Shown here in pieces: positions 18,453 through 39,782 of a stretch of DNA of 64,000 nucleotides. Position numbers and translations under genes: made by a program. The DNA is taken from NCBI GenBank assembly GCA_026936335.1, contig JAPMXV010000028.1:26381-90380 (forward strand). The letters run 5' to 3'. The notes beneath the pieces are model-generated. The model did no database searches. It was not told the origin of the DNA and saw only the letters and a program-made list of their open reading frames with translations. The DNA comes from Mantamonas sphyraenae STR306 (taxonomy: Eukaryota > Protista > CRuMs). Within the stretch, counting starts at the first letter, position 1, and each line of letters opens with the position of its first letter.

Positions 18453-21400
18453 ATGAGCGAGGAAAACACACCTGTGGATGGTAGGTCACATTGTGCAGCA
18501 GGGCATGGGCATATGTGAAGATCTTGATTGTGTGCGGCGTCGCAAGGGTTGTCTCTGCGGATGTATGCGACACCGCGGCTCGCTGTTTGCGTGGAAAAAC
18601 GCAACCTGTTCTTGTGCGTGACCCTCCCACTGACGCCGTCGTCTCCCGCACAGTTGTCGAGGACGAAACCGTTGCTACTGAGGAAGAGGAGGAGAAGGAG
18701 CCCGAGTACAACGAGGAGGAGTGGGAGCTGAGCGACATGCGCGGCGAGTGCGAGTGGAAGGTGGAGAACTTTTTGGAGCTGGGAGAAGAGCGGATCTTTG
18801 GCCCCGAATTTGACGAGAGCCCCAAGTACAAATGGTAGGTGCCGCAGTCGTGCCATCCTGCCTGTGCACACCGTATGCGTGTCCTCCCTCCCCTACGCCC
18901 TTTCCCGCAACGCCTGCTCCTCGCCCACGCCTGCATCGCCCACCTGCGCAAGTGTCGAATTCACCCTCTCGGCCGATTTGCAAACTCTGGCCCTTGGCAG
19001 CCCCGCCCCCACCTTTTTGCCACGGTCCCCACCTCCCGCCTTGCCCGCGCACGGGCCCTCGGGTTTCCCAACCACATCTGCTTGGCCCTTTGTTTATACG
19101 ATGCCTACGCCTTGTCCCTTCGCCTCTCATGCCCGTCTGCTCACACCCTCTGTGTTTTCCGGCCGCCCTCGTCCGCCCGCCACATTTTTTTTTCCCGCAC
19201 CCACGTCTGCCCTTCCCTTGGCGCCCCTTGTCGTTGTTGTACCCCCACACAGGCGTCTCCTGCTCTTCCCGCACGGCAACCGTGTGCCTGACCTTTCGGT
19301 CTTTGTGCAGATGGTCGACCACGCCAAGAAGGGCTCCGATCTGATGCACATGACCCACTTTGCCATCAGCATCACAAACACCAAGACCGGCGAAGTCGCC
19401 GTCAAGGGTACGTTGCATGTCCCCACCTGTGCCCGTTCATTGCCCAACTCCACATGCGCCTGCCACCCCTCCCATGCATGGCAGCTCTCTCTCTCGTGCG
19501 CGCAACACACCCTGCACAACGCACTGCTTGCCCTCTCAAAAAATTCTTCCTCTCGTTCCCCGCTGCCCTTTCACCGCCAACGCCCCCACCTTTACCCACC
19601 CTTTTCCCCGTTCTCACCCCCTCTCACACACGCGTATCTCACAGATGCTCACCATCGTTTCAACAAGAACGACTCCGATTGGGGCTTCAACACGTTCATG
19701 AAGCTGTCCGAGCTGCGCAACCCGGAGAACGGGTGGATCGCAGAGGACGGCTCGCTGACCCTCAAGATCGAGATGCAGGGTTTCCGCGACACCGTTCGCT
19801 CCGATCGCATCTTCTATTCCTACGACTACGATTCGCGCAAGGCCACAGGCTTTGTCGGCCTCCAGAACCAGGGCGCAACCTGCTACATGAACTCGCTGCT
19901 CCAGACCCTGTACCACACCGCCGAGTTCCGCAAGGCCGTGTATCACATGCCCACCGAGAACGACGAGACCAACAACAGCATCCCCCTTGCCCTCCAGCGT
20001 CTTTTCTACAACCTCCAGCATTCGCCCGAGGCAGTCGAAACCAAGGAACTCACAAAGTCCTTTGGCTGGGACGCGTACGACTCGTTCACCCAGCACGACG
20101 TCCAGGAGCTCAACCGTGTGCTCTGTGACAACCTTGAAGGCAAGATGAAGGGCACAGTCGTCGAAGGCACCGTCGAAAAGATGTTCCAGGGCACCCTGCG
20201 CAACTACATCGACTGCATCAACGTCGACTACACCTCCACCCGCGACGAGGCCTTCTACGACGTCTCTCTCAACGTCAAGGGCTGCGACAACATCTACGAG
20301 TCCTTCGATTCGTACATCAAGCCCGAAATCATGGACGGCGAGAACCAGTACCGCGCCGAGGGCCATGGTCTGCAAGACGCCAAGCGCGGCTGTGCCTTCA
20401 TGAAGTTCCCTCCCGTGCTCATGATCCACCTCAAGCGCTTCGAGTACGACTTTGAGCACGACGCCATGGTCAAGGTCAATGACAAGTACGCCTTCCCGCC
20501 CATGATCGAGCTCGACAAGTACCTCCACGAGGACGCCGACCACAGCGTGCCCCAGACCTACGAGCTCCACGGCGTTCTTGTCCACTCGGGTGATGTCCAC
20601 GGCGGCCACTACTACGCCTTCCTGCGACCCACCGCCGAGAACCAGTGGTTCAAGTTTGACGACGAGCGCGTAACCACCGCCTCCGCCAAGCAGGCCATCC
20701 AGGACAACTACGGCGGCGCCGACAGCCTCAGCTACACCCTCGGTGGCAAGTCTCTCAACAGCACCAGCAAGCGCCACACCAACGGCTACATGCTTGTGTA
20801 TGTCCGCATGGCCGACATGCACCACGTTCTCGAGCCCGCCAAAGAGGAGGACGTGCCCGAGACTCTCCACGAGCGCTTCCTGCGCGAGCAGGAGGAGCAG
20901 GACAAGAAGCGTCAGGAAAAGGCAGACGCACACAAGTACTGTCAGCTGCGCATCGCCCGCGCCGAGGACCTCATCAAGCACGAGGGTTTCGACCTCTTTG
21001 ACTACAAGCAGGAGTCTGAAACCGTCGTCAAGATCCTCAAGACCTGCACTGTTGCCGAGGCCAAGGAGCAGCTCGCCGAGCAGATCGACGTGCCCGCCTG
21101 GCGCCAGCGCTGGTGGCACTGGGTCTCGCGTCAGAACAAGACCACGCGTCCCGACGTCCCGCTCACCCAGCAGGAGGAGAACAAGATGATCATGGAGGTC
21201 TGGCGCTACCAGTCCGACATCAATGTCTACGTGGAAATTGCTCCCGAGGACACCAAGGAACCCGAAGTGGACGAAGCTGCCGGCCCAGGAGGCAAGGCCG
21301 CATCTGTCTTCCCCGACTTTGTCGATGGTGACGCCTTGATGAGCTTCAAGTTCTACGACCCGACCAACAAGGAACACCCGCTCAGGTTCATCGGCAACAA

Positions 21401-22586
21401 GACCGTCAAGGTGACCGAGACGCTCAACAGCATGACTCCCATGCTCCTGGAGATGGCTGGCCTTCCCGAAGGCACCGTCCTTCAGGGCTACGAGGAGATC
21501 AAGCCCGGCATGGTCGACGCGCTCAACGCTGACAAGAGCCTTAAGGATGCAGACATCGGCACCGGTGACCTCATCACCGTCCAGGTTGCCCTGAGCGAGG
21601 AAGAGGCCGCACAGGAGATGGCCAAGTGCACAGACTACTACGAGTACATCCAGCACCGCGTTAACGTGCGTTTCCGCGACATCAGCAACCCCAAGGAGGA
21701 CGCCGTGGTTATGGAGATGAGCAAGAAGATGCCGTACGACACTGTCGACGCAGCCCTTGCAGAGAAACTGGGCGTGGAGCCGCTCCACCTGCGCTTCACC
21801 GCTCACAACACCTTCTACGACCAGCCCAAGACGCACAAAATCAAGCGAAACGACAAGATCAAGCTCAGCGACATGCTGTACGGCATGTACCAGCCGCCCA
21901 CTGACATCCTCTTTTTCGAGAAGCTCGACTGCCCAATCACCGAGCTGGAGAACAAGAAGAGCGTCAAGGTGCGCTGGTTTTCCTCGCAAGTCAAGGCCGG
22001 CAAGGAACACACCTTGCTGCTGCCCAAGGACGGCAAGGTCCAGGAGCTGCTCGATCGTGTTGCCGAGCTGGAGGAGCTTGACGCCGAAAATGGCTCGGGC
22101 AAGCTGCGTCTGCTCGAGGTCTGGCATTCCAAGATCACCAAGACCATGCTGCCCACCGACTCGATCTACCTGATCAGCGACTACGCCACCTGGCGCGTCG
22201 AGGAGATCCCCAAGGAAGAGGCCGAGGCAACCGACGACGACCGTGTCGTGCGCGTGCAGCACGTGCAGAAGGAGTCTCCTCTGCTGCGCATGTTTGGTGA
22301 CCCGTTCTTCTTTGTGCTCCACGCCAATGACACTGTCGCTGACGTGCGTGCCCGTCTCCAGGCCAAGCTTGGCATCGAGGACGAAGAGTTCAAGACCTGG
22401 AAGTTGGCCATGTGCTCCTTCCTGCGCATTGATCACTACCTCGAGGACGATGAGGACCTTTCCAAGCTCAACTTTATCTCTAGCGAGTATCTTGGCCTGG
22501 AGCACAAGGATACCACCCCGCACACAACTTCGCGCGGCGGCGGTCACTCCATGTTCCGCGAGAAGGCCATTGTCATCAAGAACTGA
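18453..22586 (+). CDS. USP7: Ubiquitin carboxyl-terminal hydrolase 7 (USP7/UBP12-13/Ubp15): MATH + USP catalytic domain + Ubl tail; 4 exons
   Basis: MATH domain (WRLLLFPHGN, DWGF), Cys box GLQNQGATCYMNSLLQ, His box VLVHSGDVHGGHYYAF and C-terminal LGLEH...EKAIVIKN. Introns at 18481-18653, 18835-19252 and 19408-19644. Confidence 0.96.
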
Positions 22587-22635
22587 AGGAAATGAACATC
22601 CAGGACTGCCAATTTCTCACCGTGCTCTTGACAGG

Positions 22636-25600
22636 AACGGCCAAGGGCTCCAAGTCGTGTGTGCTGCTGTGAGTTGATGGATGCAAGGGGACCAGAAGAA
22701 ACTGTGGCTGGCCGCGGGTGAGAAAGTGGAATGAAAGGCGCACCGAGTGTGAGATTGGCTTCGCAGTGCACAGAAGAGCACCGCACACTGAATGCAAGCG
22801 ACCTGAAAGCGGGTTTGGCCACACGAAGGGTTGTCATTGCGCATGGGCGGGCATCAAAAAAACAAAAAAAACCGTCTCTTTTGAGATTCGCTTGCACGCC
22901 GGATCGTCACCAAGAAAGACAAAACACCAACTGTTGAACGAGTCTGTACTCTCAAACACACCAACAAACCCCGTGCTTAGGCAAGAAAGCAAAAACCTAT
23001 TTCTTTCAAGAAACCAACCAACACCAAGAAGAATGTCGTCTGAAGGCAAGCAGCAGCAGTCGCAGGCCCAGCAGGGTCAGGGTCAACAGGGCCAGTCGCA
23101 GTTCCAGTCTCCGTCTCTGTACGTGGGCGATCTGCACCCGGACGTGACGGAGGCAGTTCTCTTTGAGCTGTTTTCGCAGGCCGGCACGGTGCAGAGCATT
23201 CGCGTGTGCCGTGACTCGATTACGCGCCGTTCTCTCGGCTACGCGTACATCAACTACCAGTCGACGATGGATGGTAGGTTTATGCGGAGGCAGTACAACG
23301 TGCAGTGTGCATCGGATGGGATGGCGTACGAGGTGTGAGAGAGTGCATGGGTGCGTGTGCGGTGGGGGCAGGGTTTGGTGAGGAATGGCCCTTCGCAAGA
23401 ACGCTTTCCGGGTAAGGCAGCGGAGGAAGCGGTCCGGGGCCGAATGCAGGCGGAGGAGGCAGAGGCAGAGGGGACAAGAGACGGATTCGGGAGGAGGCAG
23501 GGTGTGGGCAGAGCATGGGGTGTACGGGTTGCATGAGGGAGCAAGGTGGTGAGCGGGGTAGCAGCGGGCAGAAGTGCATTTTTTCGTGGACGGTGGAAAA
23601 ATTTGCATGTCCGCTGGAGTGAACGGCAAAGGGCAAAGAGAATGGGTGTGTAGCAATGACTGACACAACAACAACGGGTGTGGCCTGGTATGAACACACA
23701 TGACCCCATGGAATGCATGGCGCGTACATGACACACACACACCACACACACACCACACAGCCGAGCGTGCTCTGGACACGCTGAACTTTACGTCGATCAA
23801 CGGACAGCCGTGCCGTGTGATGTGGTCGCACCGTGACCCGAGCCAGCGCAAGAGCGGCCAGGGCAACATCTTTATCAAGAACCTGGACGAGTCGATCAAC
23901 AACAAGGCGCTGTACGACGTGTTCAGCTCGTTCGGAAACATCCTGAGCGCCAAGGTGGCGATGGACCAGCAGGGCAACAGCAAGGGCTACGGCTTTGTGC
24001 AGTTTGACAGCGACGAAGGAGCGCAGAAGGCCATCGACAAGGTGAACGGCATGCTTCTGAACGACAAGAAGGTGTTTGTGGGCCCGTTTGTGCCGAAGAA
24101 GGAGAGGCAGAAGAACGGCGAGCGCAACTTTACCAATGTGTACGTGAAGAACGTGGCACTGGCGGTGACGGAGGAGGAGCTGGAGGAGCTGTTCAGCAAG
24201 TACGGCGAGATCACGTCCCTGGTGATCATGCAGAAGAAGGTGAAGGCCAGCGTGGCACAGAAGCTGCTGGAGGGCAAGGGCAACTCGGAGGGGGAAGAGG
24301 ACGGCGAAGGAGAGGAGGAGGAGGAAGAGGGCGAGGAGGGCAAGAAGGAGGGCGAAGAGGGCGAGAAGGAGGAGGCAGGCGCAGATGATGAGGAGATGGT
24401 GACGGTGTCGCGGGGCTTTGGGTTTGTGAACTTCAAGGAGACGTCGGCAGCACGTGCAGCAGTGGACGAGCTGGACGGATTCGAGCTGAAGGGACAGGCA
24501 TTGACGGTGACGCGTGCGCAGAAGAAGAGCGAGCGCCAGCAGGAGCTGCAGAAGAAGTTCCAGCAGATGCGTGAGGAGCGTCTGAACCGATACCAGGGCG
24601 TGAACGTGTACGTGAAGAACCTGGACGACGCAGTGGACGACCAGAAGCTGCGGGAAGAGTTTGCACCGTTTGGAACGATCACGAGCTCCAAGGTGATGGT
24701 GGACGAGAAGGGCAACTCGAAGGGCTTTGGGTTTGTGTGCTTCTCGTCTGCTGAGGAGGCGACCAAGGCAGTGACGGACATGAACGGCAAGCACATCGGA
24801 CAGAAGCCGATCTACGCGGCTCTGGCTCAGCGCAAGGAGGTGCGCCGTGCACAGCTGGAGGCGCAGCATGCGCAGCGTCAGAACGCGCTGCGCATCCAGC
24901 AGCAGGGGAACATGCAGCAGCAGAACCAGATGTATGCGCAGCAGGCACAGATGTTCTACCAGCAGCAGGCACAGCAGCAGATGGGACCGAACGGACGTCT
25001 GGTGTACAACGTGGTGCCGCAGTTTGGACGTGGGCAGGGTCAGCAGGGCCAGCAGCAGGGATTTGTGGTGCCGCAGCAGCAGCAGCAGGCTCAGCAGCAG
25101 CAACGCCAACAGCGCAACCCGAACCAGAACGTGCAGAGGCAGCAGGGTGGACAGCAGCAGGGTGGACAGCAGCAGCAGGGTGGCGAGGGTGACAGCATGG
25201 AGGCACTGACGATCACGGAGCTGACGTCTGCAAGCCCCGCCGAGCAGAAGGACATGCTGGGCGACCGTCTGTTCCCGCTGGTGAACGACCTGGAGGAGAT
25301 CCCGGACATGGACACGGCCGCCAAGATCACAGGCATGCTTCTGGAGATGGACAACTTTGAGCTGCTCCATCTGCTGGAGGTGCCCGAGGCACTGGCAGCC
25401 AAGGTTGGCGAGGCGCAGAAGGTGCTGCAGGCTCACATGCAGCAGCAGGGCGGTGAGCAGTAAGGAGGCTGCTGCGGAGGAGAGAGGAGGAGGAGGAGGA
25501 GGAGGAGGAGGAAGGTGGGGAGGGCAACCGGGAATTGGCACGGCGGCCAGGCACGCTGGAGAACACTCTGGGATGACAAGGAGTGGCTTGTGTGTGACCT

Positions 25601-26342
25601 GTGAGGCAGGGTGCAGCCCGGCCAAGGCTGGTTTTTGGGTGGGACGTGAGGAGAGGAGTTTGGGAGAGGGTGGCGGAGGAGGGAGGGAGGGGCACACAGG
25701 ACAGGTGTCCAGGTGCATGGCGGGTGTTTTGGCCAAGTGCTTTGTGGGGACATGCAGAGATGAAGGAGCCCAACAACAAGAAAGGCGGGGGCGAGCGGCG
25801 GCGAGGAAGCCACAAGCCAATGAGCAACGATGAGCGATGACGAACGGTGGGCAGAGCGTATGGCGCACTAGGGTGTGCGAGAGTGATGCACATGGTGGGA
25901 ATCGCAGGTGCTCGGCAAGGCGGAGGCGAGGGGGCTCGCACGCGCAGGAGGAGCGCGCGGTCGGACGGCGGAGCAACAAGAGCAACCCGAGAACACGAAC
26001 GAGCGCGTAGGGTGAGATCAAGAAGCATGACCAGGAAGCAGGAGGCACTTTTGTGTCTGCATCTGGGTGACTAGGGTGGGGTGTGGAGGGAGGAAGGGGA
26101 GGGGGAGGGGGACGGAGGGATGGGAGATGGGAGGAAAGAGAGCGGGAAGGAGCACAGGATGGCCTCGAAGCATGAGCTACGGAGCACAAGAACAAGAGAT
26201 GCACAAGTGGCGGCGTGGAGAGGCCAAGGGAGAGACACGGGCAGTGAAGAGAGGTGAGATGTGGAGGAGTGGAGAAGAGATGTGTGGTGACGAGAGTGAG
26301 AATGGTGAAATGGAGCGTCCATCCACAGCAACAACGAGGTGA

Positions 26343-26374
<32 letters not shown>

Positions 26375-26531
26375 GGGGTGGGGATGGGGGCGTGGGTGTG
26401 TCGTTCATTTGGGCGATGGGCAGGGCGGCCGGAGCAGCGTCGGACGCTCAGGGTCAGAGAAGCTGAAAGACAACAAACCATGACACCCCGTTGAGGAGAA
26501 GATAGCCGACGCGAGCAAAGAAGGAGAATCC
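22636..26531. repeat. Left arm of a ~3.9-kb inverted duplication (pairs with 31486-35373)
   Basis: Reverse-complement match from AACGGCCAAGGGC (22636 to 35373) to AAGGAGAATCC (26531 to 31486). The ORF track shows mirrored identical translations. Confidence 0.97.
23033..25463 (+). CDS. PABP: Cytoplasmic poly(A)-binding protein, copy 1 (4 RRM + Q-rich linker + MLLE)
   Basis: Motifs [61 protein letters not shown] and [11 protein letters not shown]...[12 protein letters not shown]. Intron at 23274-23760. Confidence 0.97.
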
Positions 26532-27980
26532 TCGCCGGCGAGGAAACCAGGCCAAAGTGGCAAAGGTAAGTAGCACGGCAAAGGCATAGACAAGGAGATG
26601 TGTTTTGCGGTGGGGCAACCTGCAGATGGAATAACTTAATCGCACTCTGCTGTGTGCATCCGAAGAGATGGACAAAAGGCCGACCATGGGGCGGTCTTGT
26701 CCTTGCAGCCAGCTGAAAGTGCCTACGGTATGTTCTGTGGCGCCCGAGGTGTGTTGATGACGGCAATGATCGTGGTCGTCTCCGGAGAACACATGCGAGG
26801 GCCGGATATGCTTGAGAATAGCCTCAGTGGTAGGTTTGCTGAGCAGGTTTTCGTACGAGACACCCATGCCATAGTGGAGTGGAATCGAGTCTCGTTCGCT
26901 GCCACACTGTTGCTCCCCGGGCTCCCTGTGCAGGGGGACGTGTGTAAGCAAGACACGCGGCTGCATGCACCGAGGGTCAGATTGTCGACGAAGAGTTGCA
27001 TGGCAGGACGAATCGAGGATAAAGTGCTCCGTAGCGTTGCTGCCAGCCCGCGGAGAGTCCACGTAGTCGAGACAGGAGGCACAGATGGCCACAAAGGAGA
27101 CATTGAAGAGGGAAACCTCATAGTTGAGGGGTGCAAAGTGAGTGCGGTAGTTCTCCACGCTACGCTGGGTCTGCCAGCGGTCAAAGCCCACGTCGTGGTT
27201 CCCCGGGATGAAAAGCACCTTTGGGTGCGACTGTGGACGTGTATCCATGCCAACGCAACCAGGAAACACCCGCGTGAACCGCTGATACTCATGTTCGTAC
27301 TCTGCTGTGCCCCAAACGCGTCCTCCGTCAAAAAGATCTCCCAGGAAGATGATGGCGTCGGGGTCCAAAACCCCAGTCACCGCTGCAAAGCCTCGACGCA
27401 TGTACTGATCCGAAAAGTGCTGCACGAGTTGCAACAGCACATGGCTTTCGATTCCGTACGAGTAAGCGTCGGTGAGCTGAGGGTCTGCGACCAGAGCAAT
27501 GTGTTTGGAGCGCCAAGGTCGTTGCGCAAGCTGTGCTTCGTTTGCAAGGCGTCTGTGTCCAAACAAAGTGTTTCCGAATGCTTGATTGGACGTGTCACTT
27601 TGTCTCATCTCATCACGCAGCTGTTCAATGGATTCTTCACTGTTGGCACGTCCCTGTTGGGCCTGGATCCGCTCGTGCAACTCGGAAAGGGGGATGGTCT
27701 CTTCCTCGGCCCCTGGCCAGTGGCAAGTGAACATTGCCGCCGGATAGACCAGCCATTCGATGTAAAGGACAATCAAAAACCAAGAACACAGCAAAACCAG
27801 GAGAGGGCGGTCACGTGCCAACTTGCCAGCCCGTGTGGCATGTCTAGGACGCACGGAGCGCTCTTTCAGCCCGTTCTGGTCTTCCTGCACATCCTGTCGC
27901 ACCACTGGCAGTTCAAACACAACGTCACCATCCCTCGGGGAGGAACCTTGGATATGGCGTCGCGAGGTTGCCGAGCGCAT
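26454..27980 (-). CDS. Membrane metallophosphoesterase of the MPPE1/PGAP5/Cdc1 family
   Basis: Calcineurin-like motifs ADPQL.D, FLGDLFDGG, PGNHDVG, LLTHVPL and FSGDDHD, with N- and C-terminal TM segments. First ATG at 27980. Confidence 0.88.
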   Translation of the reverse strand: MRSATSRRHIQGSSPRDGDVVFELPVVRQDVQEDQNGLKERSVRPRHATRAGKLARDRPLLVLLCSWFLIVLYIEWLVYPAAMFTCHWPGAEEETIPLSELHERIQAQQGRANSEESIEQLRDEMRQSDTSNQAFGNTLFGHRRLANEAQLAQRPWRSKHIALVADPQLTDAYSYGIESHVLLQLVQHFSDQYMRRGFAAVTGVLDPDAIIFLGDLFDGGRVWGTAEYEHEYQRFTRVFPGCVGMDTRPQSHPKVLFIPGNHDVGFDRWQTQRSVENYRTHFAPLNYEVSLFNVSFVAICASCLDYVDSPRAGSNATEHFILDSSCHATLRRQSDPRCMQPRVLLTHVPLHREPGEQQCGSERDSIPLHYGMGVSYENLLSKPTTEAILKHIRPSHVFSGDDHDHCRHQHTSGATEHTVGTFSWLQGQDRPMVGLLSISSDAHSRVRLSYSICRLPHRKTHLLVYAFAVLLTFATLAWFPRRRGFSFFARVGYLLLNGVSWFVVFQLL

Positions 27981-28069
27981 GTCCGAGGGGGTTGCGTAGT
28001 GGTTGTTGGCGCAATGGTGCGGCAGCTCCACCAGCCGCCCCACCCTGGAATCCACTCACAGTTCCGTGC

Positions 28070-29341
28070 ATGAGCCAGCCCGTTGCCGACATTGGCTCGC
28101 TCTTTGCAGCGTCTGCATCGGCCATTGCACAGGTGTTTGTGGTCTGCCTCTTGGGTTTCCTCGTTGCCAAGAAGGGCATGTTTGACGAGGCTCAACAAAG
28201 GTTCACCAGCTCCCTCATCTTCAATGTCTTTCTCCCTGGACTCCTCTTTGGCAACATTGCACGTGCCCTTTCGCCCGAGAAGCTCGCGCTTCTGTGGATT
28301 TTCCCCGTGTGTTCCTTCCTCTACATGGCCCTCTCATCCCTCATGGCTACTCTCCTGTTTGAGCGTCTGTTTCCTGGTCCTGACCGAGCGCTCTCCAGTG
28401 CCTTTGTCGTCGCCTCGAGCGTGCAGAACCAGGGGTACTTGCCGTTGGCGATCGTCGCAGCCGTTGCCGGTCCCGGCAGACCCTTTTCCGAAGAGGAAGG
28501 CGCAGAGGGCATTGCCTTCATTTCCATGTTTTTCATTCTGGGCTCATTTGGCCTTTGGGCGTGGGGCTTCAACCGCATCTCCTCGCGCAAAGAACACACA
28601 GAGACCGAAAGCGCTGGCCGCGACACTTCCATCCTGGGAATTGCCAAGGATCTGTGCACCAAACCACCCATTGTGGCCATGTTCTTGTCGCCGCTTGGCC
28701 TTATCCCCGGATTCAACGATCTGCTCTTTGGTCCTGGAGGTGGGCTTCAGTGGCTCGGCTCCGCAATCGACTCCCTGGGCCAAGGAGCCATCCCGCTCAG
28801 CCTGCTCGTGCTCGGCGGCAACCTCGCCTTTGTTCCGCTGCCTCCCAAGTGGACACAGTGGATGCATCGTCGGCCTACGCGCAATGCCTCGGTGCAGCCT
28901 GCAGCAATGTCCACCGTCGAGGCGCTGCCGGTGGTTTCGTCGAAAGAGGCTGCCGCGTGGACGGATTCTGCAGACGAGATCGAGCAGGAGCTGAACGATG
29001 AGCAGGAAGATGGGCAACCCGCTAAACGCAAGCAACTGCAGCTGACAGCAGGGAATTTTGCAAGTGTCATGGGCATCCGGTACCTGTTCGCGCCGGGTGT
29101 GGCCTTTTCCCTCGTCCAGCTGGTTCTGCTGTTGCCCTTTGTCGACACCACAAATCGAATGGTTAAATTTGTGCTTTTGATTGAAGGTGTGACCCCCACG
29201 GCCATGAACATGGCTGTGTTGACCCAACTGACACACACAGGGGAGCTGGAAGTTTCTGCCCTCATGTTTGTACAGTACGTCAGCGGAATCATCATTCTCA
29301 CCCTATGGACGTTTCTCATTCTCGTATACAGCACCCAGTGA
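28070..29341 (+). CDS. Auxin efflux carrier/PILS-like (Mem_trans) transporter
   Basis: Two multi-TM halves. Motifs F.VFLPGLLF, N.GYLPLAIV, PPIVA, LGQGAIPLSLLVLGGNL and FVLLIE..TPTAMN. Confidence 0.85.
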   Translation: MSQPVADIGSLFAASASAIAQVFVVCLLGFLVAKKGMFDEAQQRFTSSLIFNVFLPGLLFGNIARALSPEKLALLWIFPVCSFLYMALSSLMATLLFERLFPGPDRALSSAFVVASSVQNQGYLPLAIVAAVAGPGRPFSEEEGAEGIAFISMFFILGSFGLWAWGFNRISSRKEHTETESAGRDTSILGIAKDLCTKPPIVAMFLSPLGLIPGFNDLLFGPGGGLQWLGSAIDSLGQGAIPLSLLVLGGNLAFVPLPPKWTQWMHRRPTRNASVQPAAMSTVEALPVVSSKEAAAWTDSADEIEQELNDEQEDGQPAKRKQLQLTAGNFASVMGIRYLFAPGVAFSLVQLVLLLPFVDTTNRMVKFVLLIEGVTPTAMNMAVLTQLTHTGELEVSALMFVQYVSGIIILTLWTFLILVYSTQ

Positions 29342-29381
29342 CGGCATCCAGTCAAAAATGCACTTCAATTTCATTTCAGTT

Positions 29382-30252
29382 TCAATTTTGCAGCTGCTGC
29401 AATCTTGCCTCCAACGCGTGCACTTTGCTCTCCAACAGCGCCACTCTCGCTTCAAGTTCAATCTGGCTCTCTTCCGGCACATCCTCTACGGCATCTTTCA
29501 CGACGTTGCTGCTACTGCTCTTGGTTTCACCCAGGTGTTCGTCGAAAAAGGATTGCAGCTCCGGCACCGTCTTGCCCTTTGTGTAGGGCACGGTTTCCTC
29601 CCCAGTGAACAGTTTGATGGTGGGGTACGCTTGTACGCTGTTGCGCTGGCAGAACTGCTTCTGCTCGTCAGTGCCCGAGCAGTGACACTCCGCAAACACA
29701 ACCCGGTCGGCAAAGTGAGCCGCCAACTTTTGGTAGTCCTTCTTCAGTGCCTTGCAGTGGGTACACCACTCCTCGTAGAACTTCATCAACACAGGCTTTC
29801 CCGTCTTGTCGATGCCATCAAAAAGATCCAGCGAGCTGGTAAACACCTGCACGGGGTCCACAGAGGGTGCGGGCGCCATCTTGAACCGGATAAACTCTTC
29901 GATGGTTTGGGGATCCTGTGCCAGCTGATACTTTCTCAATTCCACTCTCGGTGGTGCTGATGAACAGGTGAGGATAGTCCTGAAAGCCAGCCTCTTGGAT
30001 GTCGTTGCGATTTTCCGGACGCGTGGCGTCGCACTTGTAGAACGGAAGCACCGTGTGCAGCTTCTCCGAAAGTGGCTCCAGCATCCTCACCGTATCCAAA
30101 CTTGATGGGTGGTCGCTGCTGTAGAACACCACAAACTTGGGCTGATTGGACGTCTTCAACGACGAAAAGGACTGCTCAACCACAGCCGCTCGGGCCTTCT
30201 GGACGCAAAGCACATTCAACAAGAGCACCAGTGTGACCACAAACACAGCCAT
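29382..30252 (-). CDS. Signal-peptide-bearing two-domain thioredoxin/PDI-like protein (WCTHC active site, C-terminal coiled coil); one apparent +1 indel near 29931
   Basis: MAVFVVTLVLLLNVLC signal, then a Cys-less Trx-like domain (KFVVFYS...YPHL), then KFYEEWCTHCK...VQAYPTIKLF. ORFs 29818-30555 and 29382-29945 join by removing one A from GAGAAAG. Confidence 0.8.
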
Positions 30253-30334
30253 GTGACTTGGCGCCTTTCCAACAGGGTTGGTTGCTGTGTGCAGGCCAAT
30301 GCGCTTCTTCGACCACAACTCCGTGAGTGACCCC

Positions 30335-31459
30335 ATGTTTGCGCGCAGTTCTGGTGGCCGTCGCGCATGTCTGCCCACCTGTCTGTCGCTCCGCCGTGGA
30401 ATGTCTACGCTGGTCAACACAGAGGATGACAAGAAGATCAACGACCTCGTCGAGGGGGTTGTCAACGGCAACCGGACGGCGTTGAGCAGAGCAATCACTC
30501 TTGTGGAGTCCACCAAATGGGCACACATGTCCAACGCCTCCCTCATGATGACCAAGCTACTTCAATACCGCAATGAGCAGTTGGATGCCAACGAACAGTC
30601 CCCTGCAGTGCGCATTGGCATCTCTGGTTCTCCAGGAGTCGGGAAGAGCACTTTTATCAACCGCTTTGGCTCGTACTTGACTGGAAAGGGACACAAGGTG
30701 GCCGTCATGGCTGTTGACCCCACCTCTTCACTCACAGGTGGCTCCATTATGGGAGACAAGACCCGCATGATCGATTTGGCACGCGATCCCAACGCGTTTG
30801 TCCGGCCGTCCAAAACCGCCGGCACGTTGGGAGGAGTGGGTCGAAACACAAACGAGACCATTCTACTATTTGAAGCGGCTGGATACGACACAGTGCTCGT
30901 GGAAACGGTTGGTGTGGGCCAGAGTGAGGTCGCCGTTGCGCAGATGACGGACACTTTCCTCCTGCTGATGTCTCCGGGCACGGGCGACGAGCTCCAGGGA
31001 ATCAAGCGCGGCATCATGGAGCTTGCCGATGTGATTGTTGTCAACAAGGCAGACGGGGAACTTGAGAACGCAGCCCGCATCACAGCCAGCGAGTTTATGC
31101 GCGCTTTAAAGTTCCAACGACCCCGAACCAAGTTTTGGACGCCTCAGGTGCTGCGAGTGTCGGCTCTCAACGAGAGCAGCGAAGAGCGTGTGAACAACAT
31201 GGACGACGTGTGGAACACACTCCTCGACATGCACTCGCTGATGGTCGACAACGGATTCCTGGACAGCAATCGCGCAAAGCAACGCATCCAATGGATGCAC
31301 AAGTATCTCCAGGACACGGTGATGGACAGACTCCTTCGCAGCGACGACAATGCCGTTCTCGTCAAATCCATCGAGAGCGATTTGGCAAAGGGGCTTGTGT
31401 CTCCGCGCTTTGCCGCTGAGTCTCTCTTCACCAAACTTGGCATGGGCGCGCCCCAGTAA
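30335..31459 (+). CDS. MMAA: MMAA/MeaB GTPase chaperone of methylmalonyl-CoA mutase, mitochondrial
   Basis: Motifs ALSRAITLVES, RIGISGSPGVGKST, AVDPTS...GGSIMGDKTRM, VETVGVGQSE and GDELQGIKRGIMELAD..VVNKAD. The N-terminus is Arg/Ser-rich. Confidence 0.95.
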   Translation: MFARSSGGRRACLPTCLSLRRGMSTLVNTEDDKKINDLVEGVVNGNRTALSRAITLVESTKWAHMSNASLMMTKLLQYRNEQLDANEQSPAVRIGISGSPGVGKSTFINRFGSYLTGKGHKVAVMAVDPTSSLTGGSIMGDKTRMIDLARDPNAFVRPSKTAGTLGGVGRNTNETILLFEAAGYDTVLVETVGVGQSEVAVAQMTDTFLLLMSPGTGDELQGIKRGIMELADVIVVNKADGELENAARITASEFMRALKFQRPRTKFWTPQVLRVSALNESSEERVNNMDDVWNTLLDMHSLMVDNGFLDSNRAKQRIQWMHKYLQDTVMDRLLRSDDNAVLVKSIESDLAKGLVSPRFAAESLFTKLGMGAPQ

Positions 31460-31485
31460 AAACGAACCCATCAGCAAGGAAATGT

Positions 31486-34400
31486 GGATTCTCCTTCTTT
31501 GCTCGCGTCGGCTATCTTCTCCTCAACGGGGTGTCATGGTTTGTTGTCTTTCAGCTTCTCTGACCCTGAGCGTCCGACGCTGCTCCGGCCGCCCTGCCCA
31601 TCGCCCAAATGAACGACACACCCACGCCCCCATCCCCACCCCCTACACACACACACACACACACACACACATTCACCTCGTTGTTGCTGTGGATGGACGC
31701 TCCATTTCACCATTCTCACTCTCGTCACCACACATCTCTTCTCCACTCCTCCACATCTCACCTCTCTTCACTGCCCGTGTCTCTCCCTTGGCCTCTCCAC
31801 GCCGCCACTTGTGCATCTCTTGTTCTTGTGCTCCGTAGCTCATGCTTCGAGGCCATCCTGTGCTCCTTCCCGCTCTCTTTCCTCCCATCTCCCATCCCTC
31901 CGTCCCCCTCCCCCTCCCCTTCCTCCCTCCACACCCCACCCTAGTCACCCAGATGCAGACACAAAAGTGCCTCCTGCTTCCTGGTCATGCTTCTTGATCT
32001 CACCCTACGCGCTCGTTCGTGTTCTCGGGTTGCTCTTGTTGCTCCGCCGTCCGACCGCGCGCTCCTCCTGCGCGTGCGAGCCCCCTCGCCTCCGCCTTGC
32101 CGAGCACCTGCGATTCCCACCATGTGCATCACTCTCGCACACCCTAGTGTGCCATACGCTCTGCCCACCGTTCGTCATCGCTCATCGTTGCTCATTGGCT
32201 TGTGGCTTCCTCGCCGCCGCTCGCCCCCGCCTTTCTTGTTGTTGGGCTCCTTCATCTCTGCATGTCCCCACAAAGCACTTGGCCAAAACACCCGCCATGC
32301 ACCTGGACACCTGTCCTGTGTGCCCCTCCCTCCCTCCTCCGCCACCCTCTCCCAAACTCCTCTCCTCACGTCCCACCCAAAAACCAGCCTTGGCCGGGCT
32401 GCACCCTGCCTCACAGGTCACACACAAGCCACTCCTTGTCATCCCAGAGTGTTCTCCAGCGTGCCTGGCCGCCGTGCCAATTCCCGGTTGCCCTCCCCAC
32501 CTTTCCTCCTCCTCCTCCTCCTCCTCTCTCCTCCGCAGCAGCCTCCTTACTGCTCACCGCCCTGCTGCTGCATGTGAGCCTGCAGCACCTTCTGCGCCTC
32601 GCCAACCTTGGCTGCCAGTGCCTCGGGCACCTCCAGCAGATGAAGCAGCTCAAAGTTGTCCATCTCCAGAAGCATGCCTGTGATCTTGGCGGCCGTGTCC
32701 ATGTCCGGGATCTCCTCCAGGTCGTTCACCAGCGGGAACAGACGGTCGCCCAGCATGTCCTTCTGCTCGGCGGGGCTTGCAGACGTCAGCTCCGTGATCG
32801 TCAGTGCCTCCATGCTGTCACCCTCGCCACCCTGCTGCTGCTGTCCACCCTGCTGCTGTCCACCCTGCTGCCTCTGCACGTTCTGGTTCGGGTTGCGCTG
32901 TTGGCGTTGCTGCTGCTGAGCCTGCTGCTGCTGCTGCGGCACCACAAATCCCTGCTGCTGGCCCTGCTGACCCTGCCCACGTCCAAACTGCGGCACCACG
33001 TTGTACACCAGACGTCCGTTCGGTCCCATCTGCTGCTGTGCCTGCTGCTGGTAGAACATCTGTGCCTGCTGCGCATACATCTGGTTCTGCTGCTGCATGT
33101 TCCCCTGCTGCTGGATGCGCAGCGCGTTCTGACGCTGCGCATGCTGCGCCTCCAGCTGTGCACGGCGCACCTCCTTGCGCTGAGCCAGAGCCGCGTAGAT
33201 CGGCTTCTGTCCGATGTGCTTGCCGTTCATGTCCGTCACTGCCTTGGTCGCCTCCTCAGCAGACGAGAAGCACACAAACCCAAAGCCCTTCGAGTTGCCC
33301 TTCTCGTCCACCATCACCTTGGAGCTCGTGATCGTTCCAAACGGTGCAAACTCTTCCCGCAGCTTCTGGTCGTCCACTGCGTCGTCCAGGTTCTTCACGT
33401 AAACGTTCACGCCCTGGTATCGGTTCAGACGCTCCTCGCGCATCTGCTGGAACTTCTTCTGCAGCTCCTGCTGGCGCTCGCTCTTCTTCTGCGCACGCGT
33501 CACCGTCAATGCCTGTCCCTTCAGCTCGAATCCGTCCAGCTCGTCCACTGCTGCACGTGCTGCCGACGTCTCCTTGAAGTTCACAAACCCAAAGCCCCGC
33601 GACACCGTCACCATCTCCTCATCATCTGCGCCTGCCTCCTCCTTCTCGCCCTCTTCGCCCTCCTTCTTGCCCTCCTCGCCCTCTTCCTCCTCCTCCTCTC
33701 CTTCGCCGTCCTCTTCCCCCTCCGAGTTGCCCTTGCCCTCCAGCAGCTTCTGTGCCACGCTGGCCTTCACCTTCTTCTGCATGATCACCAGGGACGTGAT
33801 CTCGCCGTACTTGCTGAACAGCTCCTCCAGCTCCTCCTCCGTCACCGCCAGTGCCACGTTCTTCACGTACACATTGGTAAAGTTGCGCTCGCCGTTCTTC
33901 TGCCTCTCCTTCTTCGGCACAAACGGGCCCACAAACACCTTCTTGTCGTTCAGAAGCATGCCGTTCACCTTGTCGATGGCCTTCTGCGCTCCTTCGTCGC
34001 TGTCAAACTGCACAAAGCCGTAGCCCTTGCTGTTGCCCTGCTGGTCCATCGCCACCTTGGCGCTCAGGATGTTCCCGAACGAGCTGAACACGTCGTACAG
34101 CGCCTTGTTGTTGATCGACTCGTCCAGGTTCTTGATAAAGATGTTGCCCTGGCCGCTCTTGCGCTGGCTCGGGTCACGGTGCGACCACATCACACGGCAC
34201 GGCTGTCCGTTGATCGACGTAAAGTTCAGCGTGTCCAGAGCACGCTCGGCTGTGTGGTGTGTGTGTGGTGTGTGTGTGTCATGTACGCGCCATGCATTCC
34301 ATGGGGTCATGTGTGTTCATACCAGGCCACACCCGTTGTTGTTGTGTCAGTCATTGCTACACACCCATTCTCTTTGCCCTTTGCCGTTCACTCCAGCGGA

Positions 34401-35373
34401 CATGCAAATTTTTCCACCGTCCACGAAAAAATGCACTTCTGCCCGCTGCTACCCCGCTCACCACCTAGCTCCCTCATGCAACCCGTACACCCCATGCTCT
34501 GCCCACACCCTGCCTCCTCCCGAATCCGTCTCTTGTCCCCTCTGCCTCTGCCTCCTCCGCCTGCATTCGGCCCCGGACCGCTTCCTCCGCTACCTTACCC
34601 GGAAAGCGTTCTTGCGAAGGGCCATTCCTCACCAAACCCTGCCCCCACCGCACACGCACCCATGCACTCTCTCACACCTCGTACGCCATCCCATCCGATG
34701 CACACTGCACGTTGTACTGCCTCCGCATAAACCTACCATCCATCGTCGACTGGTAGTTGATGTACGCGTAGCCGAGAGAACGGCGCGTAATCGAGTCACG
34801 GCACACGCGAATGCTCTGCACCGTGCCGGCCTGCGAAAACAGCTCAAAGAGAACTGCCTCCGTCACGTCCGGGTGCAGATCGCCCACGTACAGAGACGGA
34901 GACTGGAACTGCGACTGGCCCTGTTGACCCTGACCCTGCTGGGCCTGCGACTGCTGCTGCTTGCCTTCAGACGACATTCTTCTTGGTGTTGGTTGGTTTC
35001 TTGAAAGAAATAGGTTTTTGCTTTCTTGCCTAAGCACGGGGTTTGTTGGTGTGTTTGAGAGTACAGACTCGTTCAACAGTTGGTGTTTTGTCTTTCTTGG
35101 TGACGATCCGGCGTGCAAGCGAATCTCAAAAGAGACGGTTTTTTTTGTTTTTTTGATGCCCGCCCATGCGCAATGACAACCCTTCGTGTGGCCAAACCCG
35201 CTTTCAGGTCGCTTGCATTCAGTGTGCGGTGCTCTTCTGTGCACTGCGAAGCCAATCTCACACTCGGTGCGCCTTTCATTCCACTTTCTCACCCGCGGCC
35301 AGCCACCGTCTTCTGGTCCCCCTTGCATCCATCAACTCACAGCAGCACACACGACTTGGAGCCCTTGGCCGTT
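31486..35373. repeat. Right arm of the ~3.9-kb inverted duplication
   Basis: Reverse complement of 22636-26531, with a few SNPs and microsatellite length differences. Confidence 0.97.
32547..34977 (-). CDS. PABP: Cytoplasmic poly(A)-binding protein, copy 2 (protein identical to copy 1)
   Basis: Identical translation in the ORF track (32547-34310 and exon 1) and the same intron. Confidence 0.97.
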
Positions 35374-35416
35374 TCGGTCTTCTTGCCGTTGTCCTTAGGC
35401 GCGACGCTGTTACCAG

Positions 35417-35453
<37 letters not shown>

Positions 35454-38400
35454 GGCCGAGGTGTTCGTGCTGGGGGCCACCTTCTCCTCAGCCTGCGGCT
35501 TCTCTTGTGCCTCGGTCTTGGCAGAAGTAGTGTTGGAATTGGGCATGCTGGGCATGCTGGGAGTGCCGCCCGAGCTGCTGTTGGCGTTGGGCATGCTGGG
35601 CATGTTGCCGCTGCTCCCGCTCTTGTTTGCGCTGGGCATGCTGGGCATGCTGGGCGTGCTTCCATTGCCACCACTGCTGCTGTTGGCACTGGGCATGCTG
35701 GGCATACTGGGCGTGCTCCCGCCACCGGAATTGCTGTTGGCACTGGGCATGCTGGGCATGCTTGGTGAGCTCGGCTGCTGCTTGTCCGAACCAGGCATGC
35801 TGGGCATGCTGGGCTTCTTCTGGCTGTCATTGCTTCCACTGGCATTGGGCATGCTGGGCATGCTGGGCATACTGGGTGTGCTCGGCTGCTTGCTTGCGTT
35901 GGCGCTTGGCATGCTGGGCATGCTGGGCGAACTTGGCTGCTTGTCACCAATGGACGGCAATGCTGTCTTGTCCAGCGGGTTGCCACCTGCAGAAGCCGAC
36001 GATGACGATGACGAGCTGGATGAGCCGTTGCTTCCTGCGTTGGGCAAAGACGGCAGCGAAGACGGCATGGAAGGAGTCGATGGTGTCTCGTCTGTTGACT
36101 TGCCACCGTCACTCATGCCGCTGCTGAACGGCGAGCTAGCTCCTCCGCGAGAGCCACTGCGCATGCGGTCGAACCCACTGGGCGTAGACGGACGTGGCGA
36201 GTCGATCTGGCTGGCTGCGTCCACGGGATGGCCCCACACTTCCACAACCAGCGCTGTGCTTTGCAGATACTTCTTGAACTCCTCTGTCACCGGATAGATG
36301 GAAAACTTTTGCGCAAAGTCAAACACGGGGTTGATCGTCTTCTCGTTGCAGCGTTCCGTGACAAACGGCTCTTCGCTCATGAAGAACTTGAACTGGCAGT
36401 ACGTGCCAAAGCCCAGCTTCTTGGGCAGGCCTCGGCACGCAACCACGTGGATCACAAAGTCCATGCGCGTGCCCAGCTCTCCCCAGTCTTCGTCGTCCAG
36501 CTCGTCGCCGCGTTCGCCGTTGGGTCCAATCGGGTAGATTTCCACCTGCAGTTCGCCCTGTTGCTTGCCCGAGTAGTCCACAATTGGCGTTTGCAAATCA
36601 ATGTCCACCGCGTACTCCAAACCCTCCAGAAAGATTTGGGACTGGCCAATGAGCTGGTCTTCGGGTGGGTCCCAGAACGGATCGTCCTCTTGGTCCAGCT
36701 GGAAGTCGTTGCCCATTTCCAGAAACTCCGAGTACATCTCGCGAATGATGTACACACGGTTGATGAACTTGTCGTAGGGCCACGTGTGCACCGCGCTGCT
36801 CTCGTGCTCGTGCAGCAGCATAGCCAGGTCCGACTCTTTCGTTTGCGACCCGCCTGCACCAGGCACCACCTTCACGATCATCTTCAGCTCAAAGTGGCAG
36901 TTCTTGCCCATTTCCTCCGCAATCGCGTTGGCTTCGTTGACCATGGGGATGGTCTTGATGAGCTTGTCCTCCAGCAGCTCCATGGCGCGTTGTTCCTTCT
37001 GCTTCTGGAACACATAGTCGTCGTGCTCAAACTTGATCTTCTCGTACTGATCCTTGAGCACCGTCAGCTGCGCTTCCATCTCTTCCTTCTTCGCTTCCAT
37101 CTGGGCGACGGCCTCGTCGTGGGCTTTCTTGGCGTCCTGATCGTCTGGGTTGGCGTCCAGTGTGGCCTTGGTTGTTTCCACCTCGCTCTGCAGCAGATCC
37201 AGCGGACGTGCAAACGTGCTCTCCTCCCGCTTGATCTGCGTCTCCAGCTGGCGCATCTGCTGCTGCCAGCGGATAGTGCGTTCGTCCGAAAATGGGCCAT
37301 CATGCTTGGTAACTCCCAGGGAGCTCATTTGTGCCGCGTTGAGCTCCTTGGCCGCAAAGGAAAAGTCCACCAGGTCGTTTCCCAGCAGAGCACCGGCCTC
37401 CTCGGGGTGTTCGGCCAGGTACTTTTCCTTTTCGGCGCGGATGCGCGCTGCCTCTTCGGGCACGTTGTAGCGGAAGAAGTGGTTGTTGCCCATCACGATG
37501 CGGTCACTGTGTTGCAGCACCACTGGGTTCTTCACCTTGATGCCGTTGACAAACGTGGGTCCTTCCACGGGTGTGAGCGTGGTGGCGCCTTCGGGCTCGC
37601 GCAGGATATCGCAATGCACCTTGGCAATGCTGAGACCCTTGAGCGTGATAAACGTGTCGCTGTCATCGCCCTCGGGCTTCTCCTTGCCAAACCGGGTCAT
37701 GCCCTCCTTGAGGTAGTAGACAAGCGACTCGGACATGAGCGGATCTTCGTTGAGGTTGACCAGATGCGGCGTGCTCTTGTCCACCTGGTAGCTGAGCTGA
37801 AGTCCAGACGCGGCCAGCTGCGACTCGCCCAGCTGTTGCTGCTCCATCGTCTTCTTCATCTTCTCCTCCCAGCTCATCTGCATCTCTGCCATCATGCGCT
37901 CCGATTGTGCCAGTTGCTCGCGCAGCTCCTCCGTCTCCTTGCTTGATCCGCCTCCGCCTCCGCCGCCGCCGCCACCTCCGCCATCGCCGCTGCTGCTGCT
38001 GCTGGTTGGGCTGGCCGCAGCAATGGTTTGGGCGTCCAAGCCTGAGCCGACAAGCATGTCTTTGAGGCGCATGATTTCCTCCTTGAGCTCTCGGATGAGC
38101 TTCTCGTTGGGGTTTTCGTTCACCACAGCCTTGTTCTTGATCTTCTTGGCACGGTCAGCATAGCGCAGCGTCGACAGTGTCTCATCGTAGTTGACATCGG
38201 CTGGCGAAATGGCAGCAATCATGATGGTTTTTGCGTTGCCACCCAGGCTCTCCTGCAACAGACGCGTGAGCTTGGAGTCACGGTAGGGAATGACATGCTT
38301 GCGGCCTTTCTTGGGCGGTTCGGCGAGCGCGGAAATCACGTTTCCCAGTGCCGACAACGACTTGTTGATGGCTGAACCCTCCTTAAGACGGTCGCCTGTG

Positions 38401-39782
38401 GCACCGGTGGAGTTGGCACGCTCGGAGCCGGCCAGATCGACCAAGTTGATCTTGGAGACCATGTCCGAGGCCTGCACAGGTGGTGGGGGTAGGTGTGATG
38501 TTGGTGTGATGTGTCTCGAGTCAGCAAATGTGTGCACATACATGCTCTCACGGCAACTGTACGTGGGGCGCATGCTCTATGGTGGTGGAGGTGGGTGTCT
38601 CTGTCCTTGCGCTTACCTCCATGGTCTCTGTGTTGACGGTGGTCTGCGTGAAAATGATGGTGAACACGGAATGCCCTCGGGAACTGGTGTTGTTCATGTT
38701 GGTGGCGGCAACAGTGCGTGCCTTGGTGCCCAACTCCATCAAGTGTTCCACATCGGCGTAGTTGCCAGCAACCATGCGCGAGCATCCGTCCACATACACG
38801 CCGGCTTCCTTGCTCTCTCGGATCTTCAGCTTGGTGTCGCCGTTGGGGTTGAACAGATCACGCAGGTTCTCGTTGTAAATCTCCAGGAAAGAGACCTCCA
38901 CCTTGGCTGTCTGGTTGGGGTTCTGGTTGTTGTGCACACGCACAAACAGCTCCTCGGACACCAGGGGAATGATGCCCTTGGCTGCGCCGTACCCAACCAT
39001 CGAATAACTCTTGCCTGCGCCTGTCTGACCGTACGCAAACAGACTGACATTGTACCCTGTGTGATTTTGCATAGGACGTGGGGTTAGTTGCTGCTCCCAA
39101 GCTCGTGGTTGCCGACACACGAGGGCGGATAAACGCAGGGTCTGGGCTGCAATTCGAAAAACGGCCTTGGGTGCTGGCCAGCTCCTTTCGATATCCACGC
39201 GCCGCGACACACACACACACACAGGGCATGTACGCAGAACGCAGGGATCACACACATAATGCATACACGCAATAGAGGATGGGGCAAACGGGCCATGCAC
39301 CTGCAGGTGCGTTGCGTACGCTCCGCGTGTTGGGTCCGGCGAGCTCCAAGGCAAAGGGAGGGGAACGGAACGAACGGTCCCAAGTGCTAACAAAACCACG
39401 CTATACCAGCGCACACACGTACCTTTGATGGCATTGTCGAGCACATCCACACCCAAGTCATTGAACACAGTTGCCTGGTCGGCAAAGTGCGAGTCGTCTG
39501 CGTTGTGGGACCAGTAGGAGAAGTCAAACGTAAACGGCTTATCCTTGCCGTTGGACGGGTTGGTGATGATCGTGGTCATGTTTTCCATCGTAATGATGCA
39601 CTTGGCGTTCATGTTCTTCTCTCTGCACACACACACGTGGTCCCAGTACACACACGTATCCCTGTCAGTGTGTGTTCCGTCCTCCTGCCCCTCTACCGCA
39701 CCACCCCAGGACCCGACGCACACACCTACCGGTCGTTGAACGGCCGCACACGCACAGCCACACGCACGCTATCTCCCGACAT
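35337..39782 (-). CDS. Kinesin-3 (KIF28/KIF1/Unc104-like): motor, FHA, coiled coil, C2-like domain, PSM repeats, CaaX; 4 exons
   Basis: Motifs [68 protein letters not shown] and [14 protein letters not shown]; ends SKSCVLL*. Introns at 39729-39623, 39422-39057 and 38616-38472. Confidence 0.93.
35540..35935 (-). repeat. Coding minisatellite of (CCCAGCATG)n blocks encoding PSMPSMP
   Basis: About eight blocks of 2-3 copies of a 9-bp unit, separated by S/G/N/K linkers. Confidence 0.85.

Follow-up and report, generated by a model that had tools for sequence, protein, structure and literature searches.

We describe a small inversion in the free-living protist Mantamonas sphyraenae STR306 that appears to have copied one of its own breakpoints. 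The stretch analysed, referred to below as the window, comprises 64,000 nucleotides of contig JAPMXV010000028.1 (C28:26381-90380), and all positions are those of the window unless a contig is named. In it, two poly(A)-binding protein (PABP) genes stand on opposite strands in the arms of a 3.9-kb inverted repeat, which encloses a unique block of four genes. The structure, its junctions, the integrity of the genes and their copy number are established. We interpret them, with a probability of about 0.7, as a real nuclear structure formed by one inversion of ~8.8 kb with duplication of the 3.9-kb PABP segment at one breakpoint. Staggered breaks, insertion followed by a flip, and template switching would all yield identical junctions, and the first of these is the likeliest molecular route.

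The inverted repeat and the genes it carries

A sequence-only reading of the window had placed the arms at 22636-26531 and 31486-35373 around a 4954-bp spacer, and these limits were recovered by a repeat search, by blastn and by alignment of the arm ends. The repeat search, run on the window, resolved the arms into collinear inverted blocks (22701-25506/32504-35309, 25512-26399/31616-32503 and 26346-26531/31486-31671) together with a 61-nt block at the outer edge. When the whole contig was compared with itself by blastn, a single inverted match of 3897 columns with 99.54% identity was obtained. The end alignments gave exact limits of homology, at 22636/35373 on the outer side and 26531/31486 on the inner side. 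A repeat of such length and identity cannot be due to chance. Self-comparison revealed no other long inverted repeat, either within the window or across the 90-kb contig. The arms are present exactly twice in the 25-Mb genome, with only short low-complexity matches elsewhere, and the flanks are single-copy in the assembly.

Pfam scans, which took in the open reading frames (ORFs) of the window between 14 and 44 kb, identified USP7, two PABP genes, Metallophos, Mem_trans (auxin efflux carrier, AEC), thioredoxin, MeaB and kinesin-3 at the locus (Table 1). All the genes that had been named from sequence were thus borne out. Each arm has an intact neighbouring gene at one end and an orphan gene tail at the other, and the orphan 3' ends of the kinesin and phosphoesterase genes lie at 22636-22672 and 31486-31563, as previously claimed. 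The last 11 codons of the intact kinesin gene (35340-35372; base 35373 closes the codon before them) lie, like its stop, inside the right arm. The 360 bp from the kinesin stop to the PABP ATG are wholly included in each arm along with the complete gene, which agrees with the earlier view that PABP was doubled with its upstream region.

The exons of the left and right PABP copies, which were analysed separately in all searches and not as a spliced full-length protein, encode identical residues and hence identical proteins. The 487-nt intron interrupts RRM1, with the N-terminal half of RRM_1 encoded in exon 1. In a family search of the genome, the classical PABP genes were the two arm copies only, and the next matches were single RRM proteins with E ~1e-13.

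Table 1. Features of the inverted-repeat locus, and close opposite-strand gene pairs on other contigs. Positions are those of the window unless a contig is named.
Feature	Position	Strand	Length	Remarks
Left arm of inverted repeat	22636..26531		3896 bp	Intact phosphoesterase gene follows at the inner end; novel junction J1 (22635/22636) at the outer end
Right arm of inverted repeat	31486..35373		3888 bp	Intact kinesin gene follows at the outer end; novel junction J2 (31485/31486) at the inner end
Unique central block	26532..31485		4954 bp	Four genes: phosphoesterase body, AEC transporter, thioredoxin, MeaB
USP7-type ubiquitin hydrolase, left flank	18798-22586 (open frame)	+		First ATG 19101; Pfam UCH, USP7_ICP0_bdg, USP7_C2, MATH_2; stop 49 bp before J1
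Orphan kinesin tail	22636..22672	+		Last codons and stop; kinesin C-terminus repeated at 22643-22672
PABP, left copy	23033..25463	+		Exon 1 23033-23273; GT..AG intron 23274-23760; exon 2 23761-25463; four RRM_1 stretches and MLLE
Calcineurin-like metallophosphoesterase (MPPE1-like), intact	26454..27980; wider span 26454-28055	-		Pfam; last 25 codons (26457-26531) inside left arm
Auxin-efflux-carrier-type membrane transporter (AEC)	28070..29341; wider span 27968-29341	+		Pfam Mem_trans
Thioredoxin-domain gene	29382..29945	-		Pfam; 5' end possibly in a further exon
MeaB/MMAA GTPase	30299..31459; wider span 30278-31459	+		Pfam; candidate ATGs 30299, 30335, 30401; stop 26 bp before J2
Orphan phosphoesterase tail	31486..31563	+		Last 25 codons and stop; repeat of the gene's 3' end
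PABP, right copy	32547..34977	-		Exon 2 32547-34249; intron 34250-34736; exon 1 34737-34977
Kinesin-3-type gene, intact	35337..39723	-		Several exons; motor, Kinesin_assoc, FHA, KIF1B, CaaX end
RPL18A pair	C46:269428-269559, C46:278762-278893	-, +		Both 69.1 bits; exactly two in genome
Pirin pair	C49:137636-137893, C49:141231-141452	-, +		97.4 and 96.9 bits
PRP4 pair	C36:150661-150747, C36:154568-154654	+, -		Both 47.5 bits; exactly two in genome

Differences between the arms

Base-by-base alignment revealed eight substitutions between the arms, at 22703, 23418, 23543, 23936, 24572, 24608, 25367 and 25865. In addition, a GGA run differs by 5 bp (25507-25511) and a (GT)n run by 2 bp (26344-26345), and the stretch 22686-22700 contains an indel in a G run along with a 2-bp AA indel. 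The four coding differences are all third-position and synonymous (P = 0.002 by chance), and none of the eight substitutions is nonsynonymous (P = 0.02). Since errors ignore the reading frame, and all coding changes are synonymous, the arm differences are real variants filtered by selection and not consensus errors. Judged from these sequences, both PABP copies are apparently under purifying selection, and the organism apparently carries a doubled, fully functional PABP.

The arm interiors differ by ~0.2%. Close to the outer edge, three differences are packed into 18 bp; the final 186 bp at the inner edge have none. This distribution would fit gene conversion, a recent origin or mutations that arose as the junction formed. 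There are three explanations for the ~0.2% divergence: the duplication is young, gene conversion has homogenised the arms, or the assembler drew on different alleles of a diploid genome. For an inversion with duplication, the arms are alike either through youth or through gene conversion. Two of the eight substitutions lie in the PABP intron (23274-23760), in a host whose genes are mostly mono-exonic (PMC10492846).

Ancestral order and proposed route of the inversion

The ancestral order MPPE1> <PABP <kinesin is forced, because each arm runs into an intact gene at one end only. This part of the order proposed from sequence therefore stands, and the remaining part, in which the USP7 stop lay next to the MeaB stop, is the simplest inference. 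When the sequence ending at 22635 is joined to that ending at 31485 in reverse complement, the two stops are 49 + 26 = 75 bp apart, as had been estimated (~75 bp). The AEC and thioredoxin stops have a comparable spacing of 40 bp. The present order corresponds to A + reverse(C + arm) + arm + K, with ~8.8 kb inverted and 3.9 kb duplicated at one breakpoint.

J1 shares a single base pair with the ancestral continuation, and J2 shares none. There is no filler at either, and a search for target-site duplications at the junctions found none. Junctions of this kind fit breakage and end joining. The earlier statement that no transposase or target-site duplication is visible was upheld, and no dispersed repeat was found either.

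Two other origins of the arms were considered and rejected. The arms are not transposon-derived, as they have just two genomic copies, no transposase, no target-site duplication and no Pfam domain beyond PABP. The arms also contain no Rfam family or tRNA, and an origin from non-coding RNA was rejected on this ground.

According to the favoured explanation, the locus would have started as USP7> <MeaB TRX> <AEC MPPE1> <PABP <kinesin, where TRX is the thioredoxin gene. The likeliest route would be a clean break between USP7 and MeaB combined with a 3.9-kb staggered break around PABP. Fill-in of the overhangs and homology-independent joining of the ends would have followed. This would have inverted the PABP segment together with the four-gene block, with a PABP copy in opposite orientation at each end of the block, and the result would be two intact PABP genes and two short orphan gene tails. 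The sequence-only reading had named a staggered-break inversion as the expected source of such a pattern. The duplication and the pattern of the junctions support this, but the same junctions can also be reached by two other routes.

The first of these has two steps: the PABP segment would have been copied in inverted orientation into the space between USP7 and MeaB, and recombination between the arms would later have flipped the block. Such a history reproduces J1 and J2 exactly, as an arm-to-arm flip swaps the neighbours of the inner ends, and inversions mediated by inverted repeats are known to recur, with signs of recurrence in 11/16 human cases (PMC3961182). However, it needs two events where one suffices, and the supposed insertion has left no mark: there is no target-site duplication, and the copy retains the PABP intron and intergenic DNA and so has no features of a retro-copy. 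We consider this two-step history unlikely.

The second route is replicative, of the type known as fork stalling and template switching or microhomology-mediated break-induced replication (FoSTeS/MMBIR). A stalled fork would have switched to the opposite strand at the kinesin end of the PABP segment and switched back at the phosphoesterase end, so that the segment was copied in reverse and the block inverted. Two template switches do produce the topology A + reverse(C + arm) + arm + K. Error-prone repair synthesis can produce clusters of changes near junctions, and the three differences within 18 bp lie ~50-70 bp inside J1. On the other hand, two of these three are indels in simple runs and are perhaps sequencing residue. 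Microhomology is limited to a single base pair at J1 and is absent from J2, which weakly disfavours this origin, and a partial 4/6 match before J1 closes with a mismatch at the would-be primer terminus. A replicative origin is, in our judgement, rather unlikely.

Assembly and chromosomal setting

The FALCON primary assembly GCA_026936335.1 was reported as 25.06 Mb in 78 contigs with a GC content of 59.19% (PMC10492846), and we count 25,061,354 bases in 78 contigs with a G+C of ~59%. It was built from PacBio RSII (112x) and Illumina (115x) reads of ~90 ug of bulk-culture DNA and was polished with Racon and Pilon (PMC10492846). The ~90 ug of bulk-culture DNA indicates that no amplification was used. 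The genome is diploid by single-nucleotide polymorphism frequencies (PMC10492846), and the genome paper makes no mention of inversions or inverted duplications (PMC10492846). The 5' end of C28 consists of CCCTAA telomere repeats (C28:1-130), which places the inverted repeat 49-62 kb from the chromosome end.

An assembly artefact would imply a single PABP gene, with the second arm and the junctions made by FALCON from chimeric reads or mixed haplotypes. The structure is known here from the assembled contig alone, in FALCON primary contigs of a diploid genome; the ~0.2% arm difference could be allelic, and the short contig lacks one of its ends. However, assemblers mis-join inside repeats, and J1 and J2 connect unique sequence to the arm ends and lie outside the repeated sequence. 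An assembly graph of the ancestral and the simply inverted haplotypes has no edge between the MeaB end and the phosphoesterase tail, and because no such edge exists, haplotype mixing cannot yield the contig. Moreover, random chimeras do not survive a 112x consensus, the assembly contains no second copy of the flanks, and three other loci carry close opposite-strand pairs of one gene. Taken together, we regard an artefact of assembly as improbable.

A palindrome from a missed PacBio adapter was rejected separately. Such palindromes are perfect fold-backs in which the spacer is absent or adapter-sized, and they usually lie at a contig end. Here, the spacer measures 4954 bp and contains four intact genes, 8 substitutions distinguish the arms, and the repeat lies 49-62 kb into a 90-kb contig.

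Several points weigh against a single real inversion with duplication. The support for J1 and J2 is argued from the assembled structure and not from reads, and the contig is short (90 kb) with one end inside a tandem array. The ancestral order was derived without an outgroup, as no genome of a relative exists and there are transcriptomes only. The 3.9-kb stagger exceeds the longest duplication in Drosophila yakuba (~1.9 kb, PMC1885836). The differences between the arms cluster at the outer edge only (22686-22703), which fits neither gene conversion sparing both edges nor a very recent origin. Two indels of this cluster, in the G run and at AA, may be unpolished PacBio errors, and in a diploid genome some arm differences may be allelic.

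Recombination between the arms

The arms have the length and similarity needed to recombine and, by analogy with other long inverted repeats, repeated flipping of the central block, as had been suggested from sequence, is plausible. A flip would not be expected to act as a regulatory switch, since the central genes face identical sequence for 3.9 kb.

An invertible switch driven by a recombinase and altering expression, as in bacterial phase variation or with FLP of the yeast 2-micron plasmid, has the geometry in its favour, namely inverted repeats around a block of genes, and nothing else. The arms are 3.9-kb gene copies and not short sites. The genes are complete as oriented, and neither promoters nor gene ends would be swapped by a flip. 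Pfam scans of the ORFs of 14-44 kb detected just the housekeeping families of Table 1 and no recombinase, integrase or transposase domain. Such a switch is extremely improbable.

Other features of the locus and the contig

A micro-ORF of 26 codons (22592-22672) begins 5 bp past the USP7 stop and closes with the CaaX-type end of the kinesin (..SKSCVLL). It is probably a meaningless chimeric frame made by the breakpoint. The kinesin gene itself, in the region encoding its C-terminus just beyond the right arm (35500-35950), contains degenerate repeats in 9-nt phase (CATGCTGGG on the + strand, Pro-Ser-Met on the coding strand).

Upstream of PABP, an A-rich tract at ~22853-22873, made up of two A runs split by a C, lies ~160-180 nt before the ATG and is mirrored in the right arm. 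From its sequence and position, this duplicated tract may be an autoregulatory PABP-binding element in the 5' untranslated region. Downstream, ~990 bp separate the convergent PABP and phosphoesterase stops (25464-26453; mirror 31564-32546), compared with 40-75 bp in other convergent pairs. This intergenic stretch is G-rich and of low complexity, with (GGA)n and (GT)n runs, and carries the GGA and GT indels that distinguish the arms. It gave no Pfam, Rfam or tRNA match.

Towards the far end of the window (48500-64000; C28:74900-90380), there is a large array with a unit of 384 nt (multiples 768, 1152 and higher), several copies of which are 99-100% identical. The contig ends inside this array without a telomere. 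The array is probably a giant repeat-protein gene and the cause of the contig break.

In protein searches, the nearest relative of the USP7 protein was a EukProt transcriptome protein with 75% identity, and all other matches were at <=47%, as would be expected of an undersampled lineage. None of 13 candidate protein forms from the window had an exact match in the public protein collection.

Close inverted pairs elsewhere in the genome

Recurrence was tested by family searches for three families, which give positions, strands and scores only, and the likeness of these loci to the PABP locus is known from these alone. As at the PABP locus, RPL18A, pirin and PRP4 (Table 1) each have two copies in opposite orientation; the copies are separated by 3.6-9.3 kb and their scores match or almost match. 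Genes that are otherwise single thus recurrently form close inverted pairs in this genome. Such pairs stay a minority, as seen from the BUSCO duplication of 0.8% for the M. sphyraenae assembly.

It is conceivable that inversion with duplication is unusually active in this genome, with many housekeeping genes (among them PABP, RPL18A, PRP4 and pirin) kept in homogenised, near-identical inverted repeats that flip small blocks, and with the culture being a mixture of structural isomers. We consider this wider proposal doubtful.

Discussion

The closest known counterparts are in Drosophila, where Ranz et al. (2007) found inverted duplications of unique sequence in 17/29 inversions, and at one breakpoint only in 12/18 (PMC1885836). 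As in these staggered-break inversions, the breakpoint sequence in Mantamonas is ancestrally unique and gene-bearing, lies inverted at both ends of the segment and involves no transposon (PMC1885836). However, the Mantamonas inversion is ~8.8 kb in size whereas those in Drosophila are chromosome-scale. Its duplication, at 3.9 kb, is also longer than those of D. yakuba, where the median is 321 bp and the longest reaches ~1.9 kb (PMC1885836). The Mantamonas copies are 99.5% alike and both have an intact, selected gene, in contrast to ~88% in Drosophila (PMC1885836). 

The locus also resembles the human inversions associated with inverted repeats that were described in 2014 (PMC3961182), in which long, highly similar repeats flank a unique segment, there of 5.1-226 kb. 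In the human cases, recombination of the two arms inverts the segment and leaves genes unbroken, with recurrence in 11/16, and both orientations have been genotyped in populations and apes (PMC3961182). In Mantamonas, by contrast, there is one orientation in one assembly, and flipping is inferred. Plastid and herpesvirus-type genomes also have large, gene-bearing inverted repeats, which are kept identical by recombination and between which the unique region flip-flops. Those genomes are multicopy and hold both isomers at similar levels, whereas the Mantamonas repeat is a nuclear locus of a diploid.

For users of the assembly, read mapping on the arms is ambiguous and the orientation of the block may be polymorphic. 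Inversion with breakpoint duplication is an already known kind of rearrangement, and the value of the present case lies mainly in its being part of a genome-wide pattern. It offers a clean example, from a non-animal, of an inversion whose own breakpoint was copied, and CRuMs, the supergroup to which Mantamonas belongs, has few sequenced members. The sole cytoplasmic PABP gene of the organism has been doubled, its promoter region included, and PABP dosage is usually tightly controlled. If inversion with duplication and block flipping were indeed active processes in this genome, the PABP locus would be a live example from a lineage placed close to the Amorphea root. Added to the other close inverted gene pairs, of which there are at least three, the locus suggests that small inversions with duplication are a regular route by which gene order is reshuffled and new gene copies arise in a compact genome.

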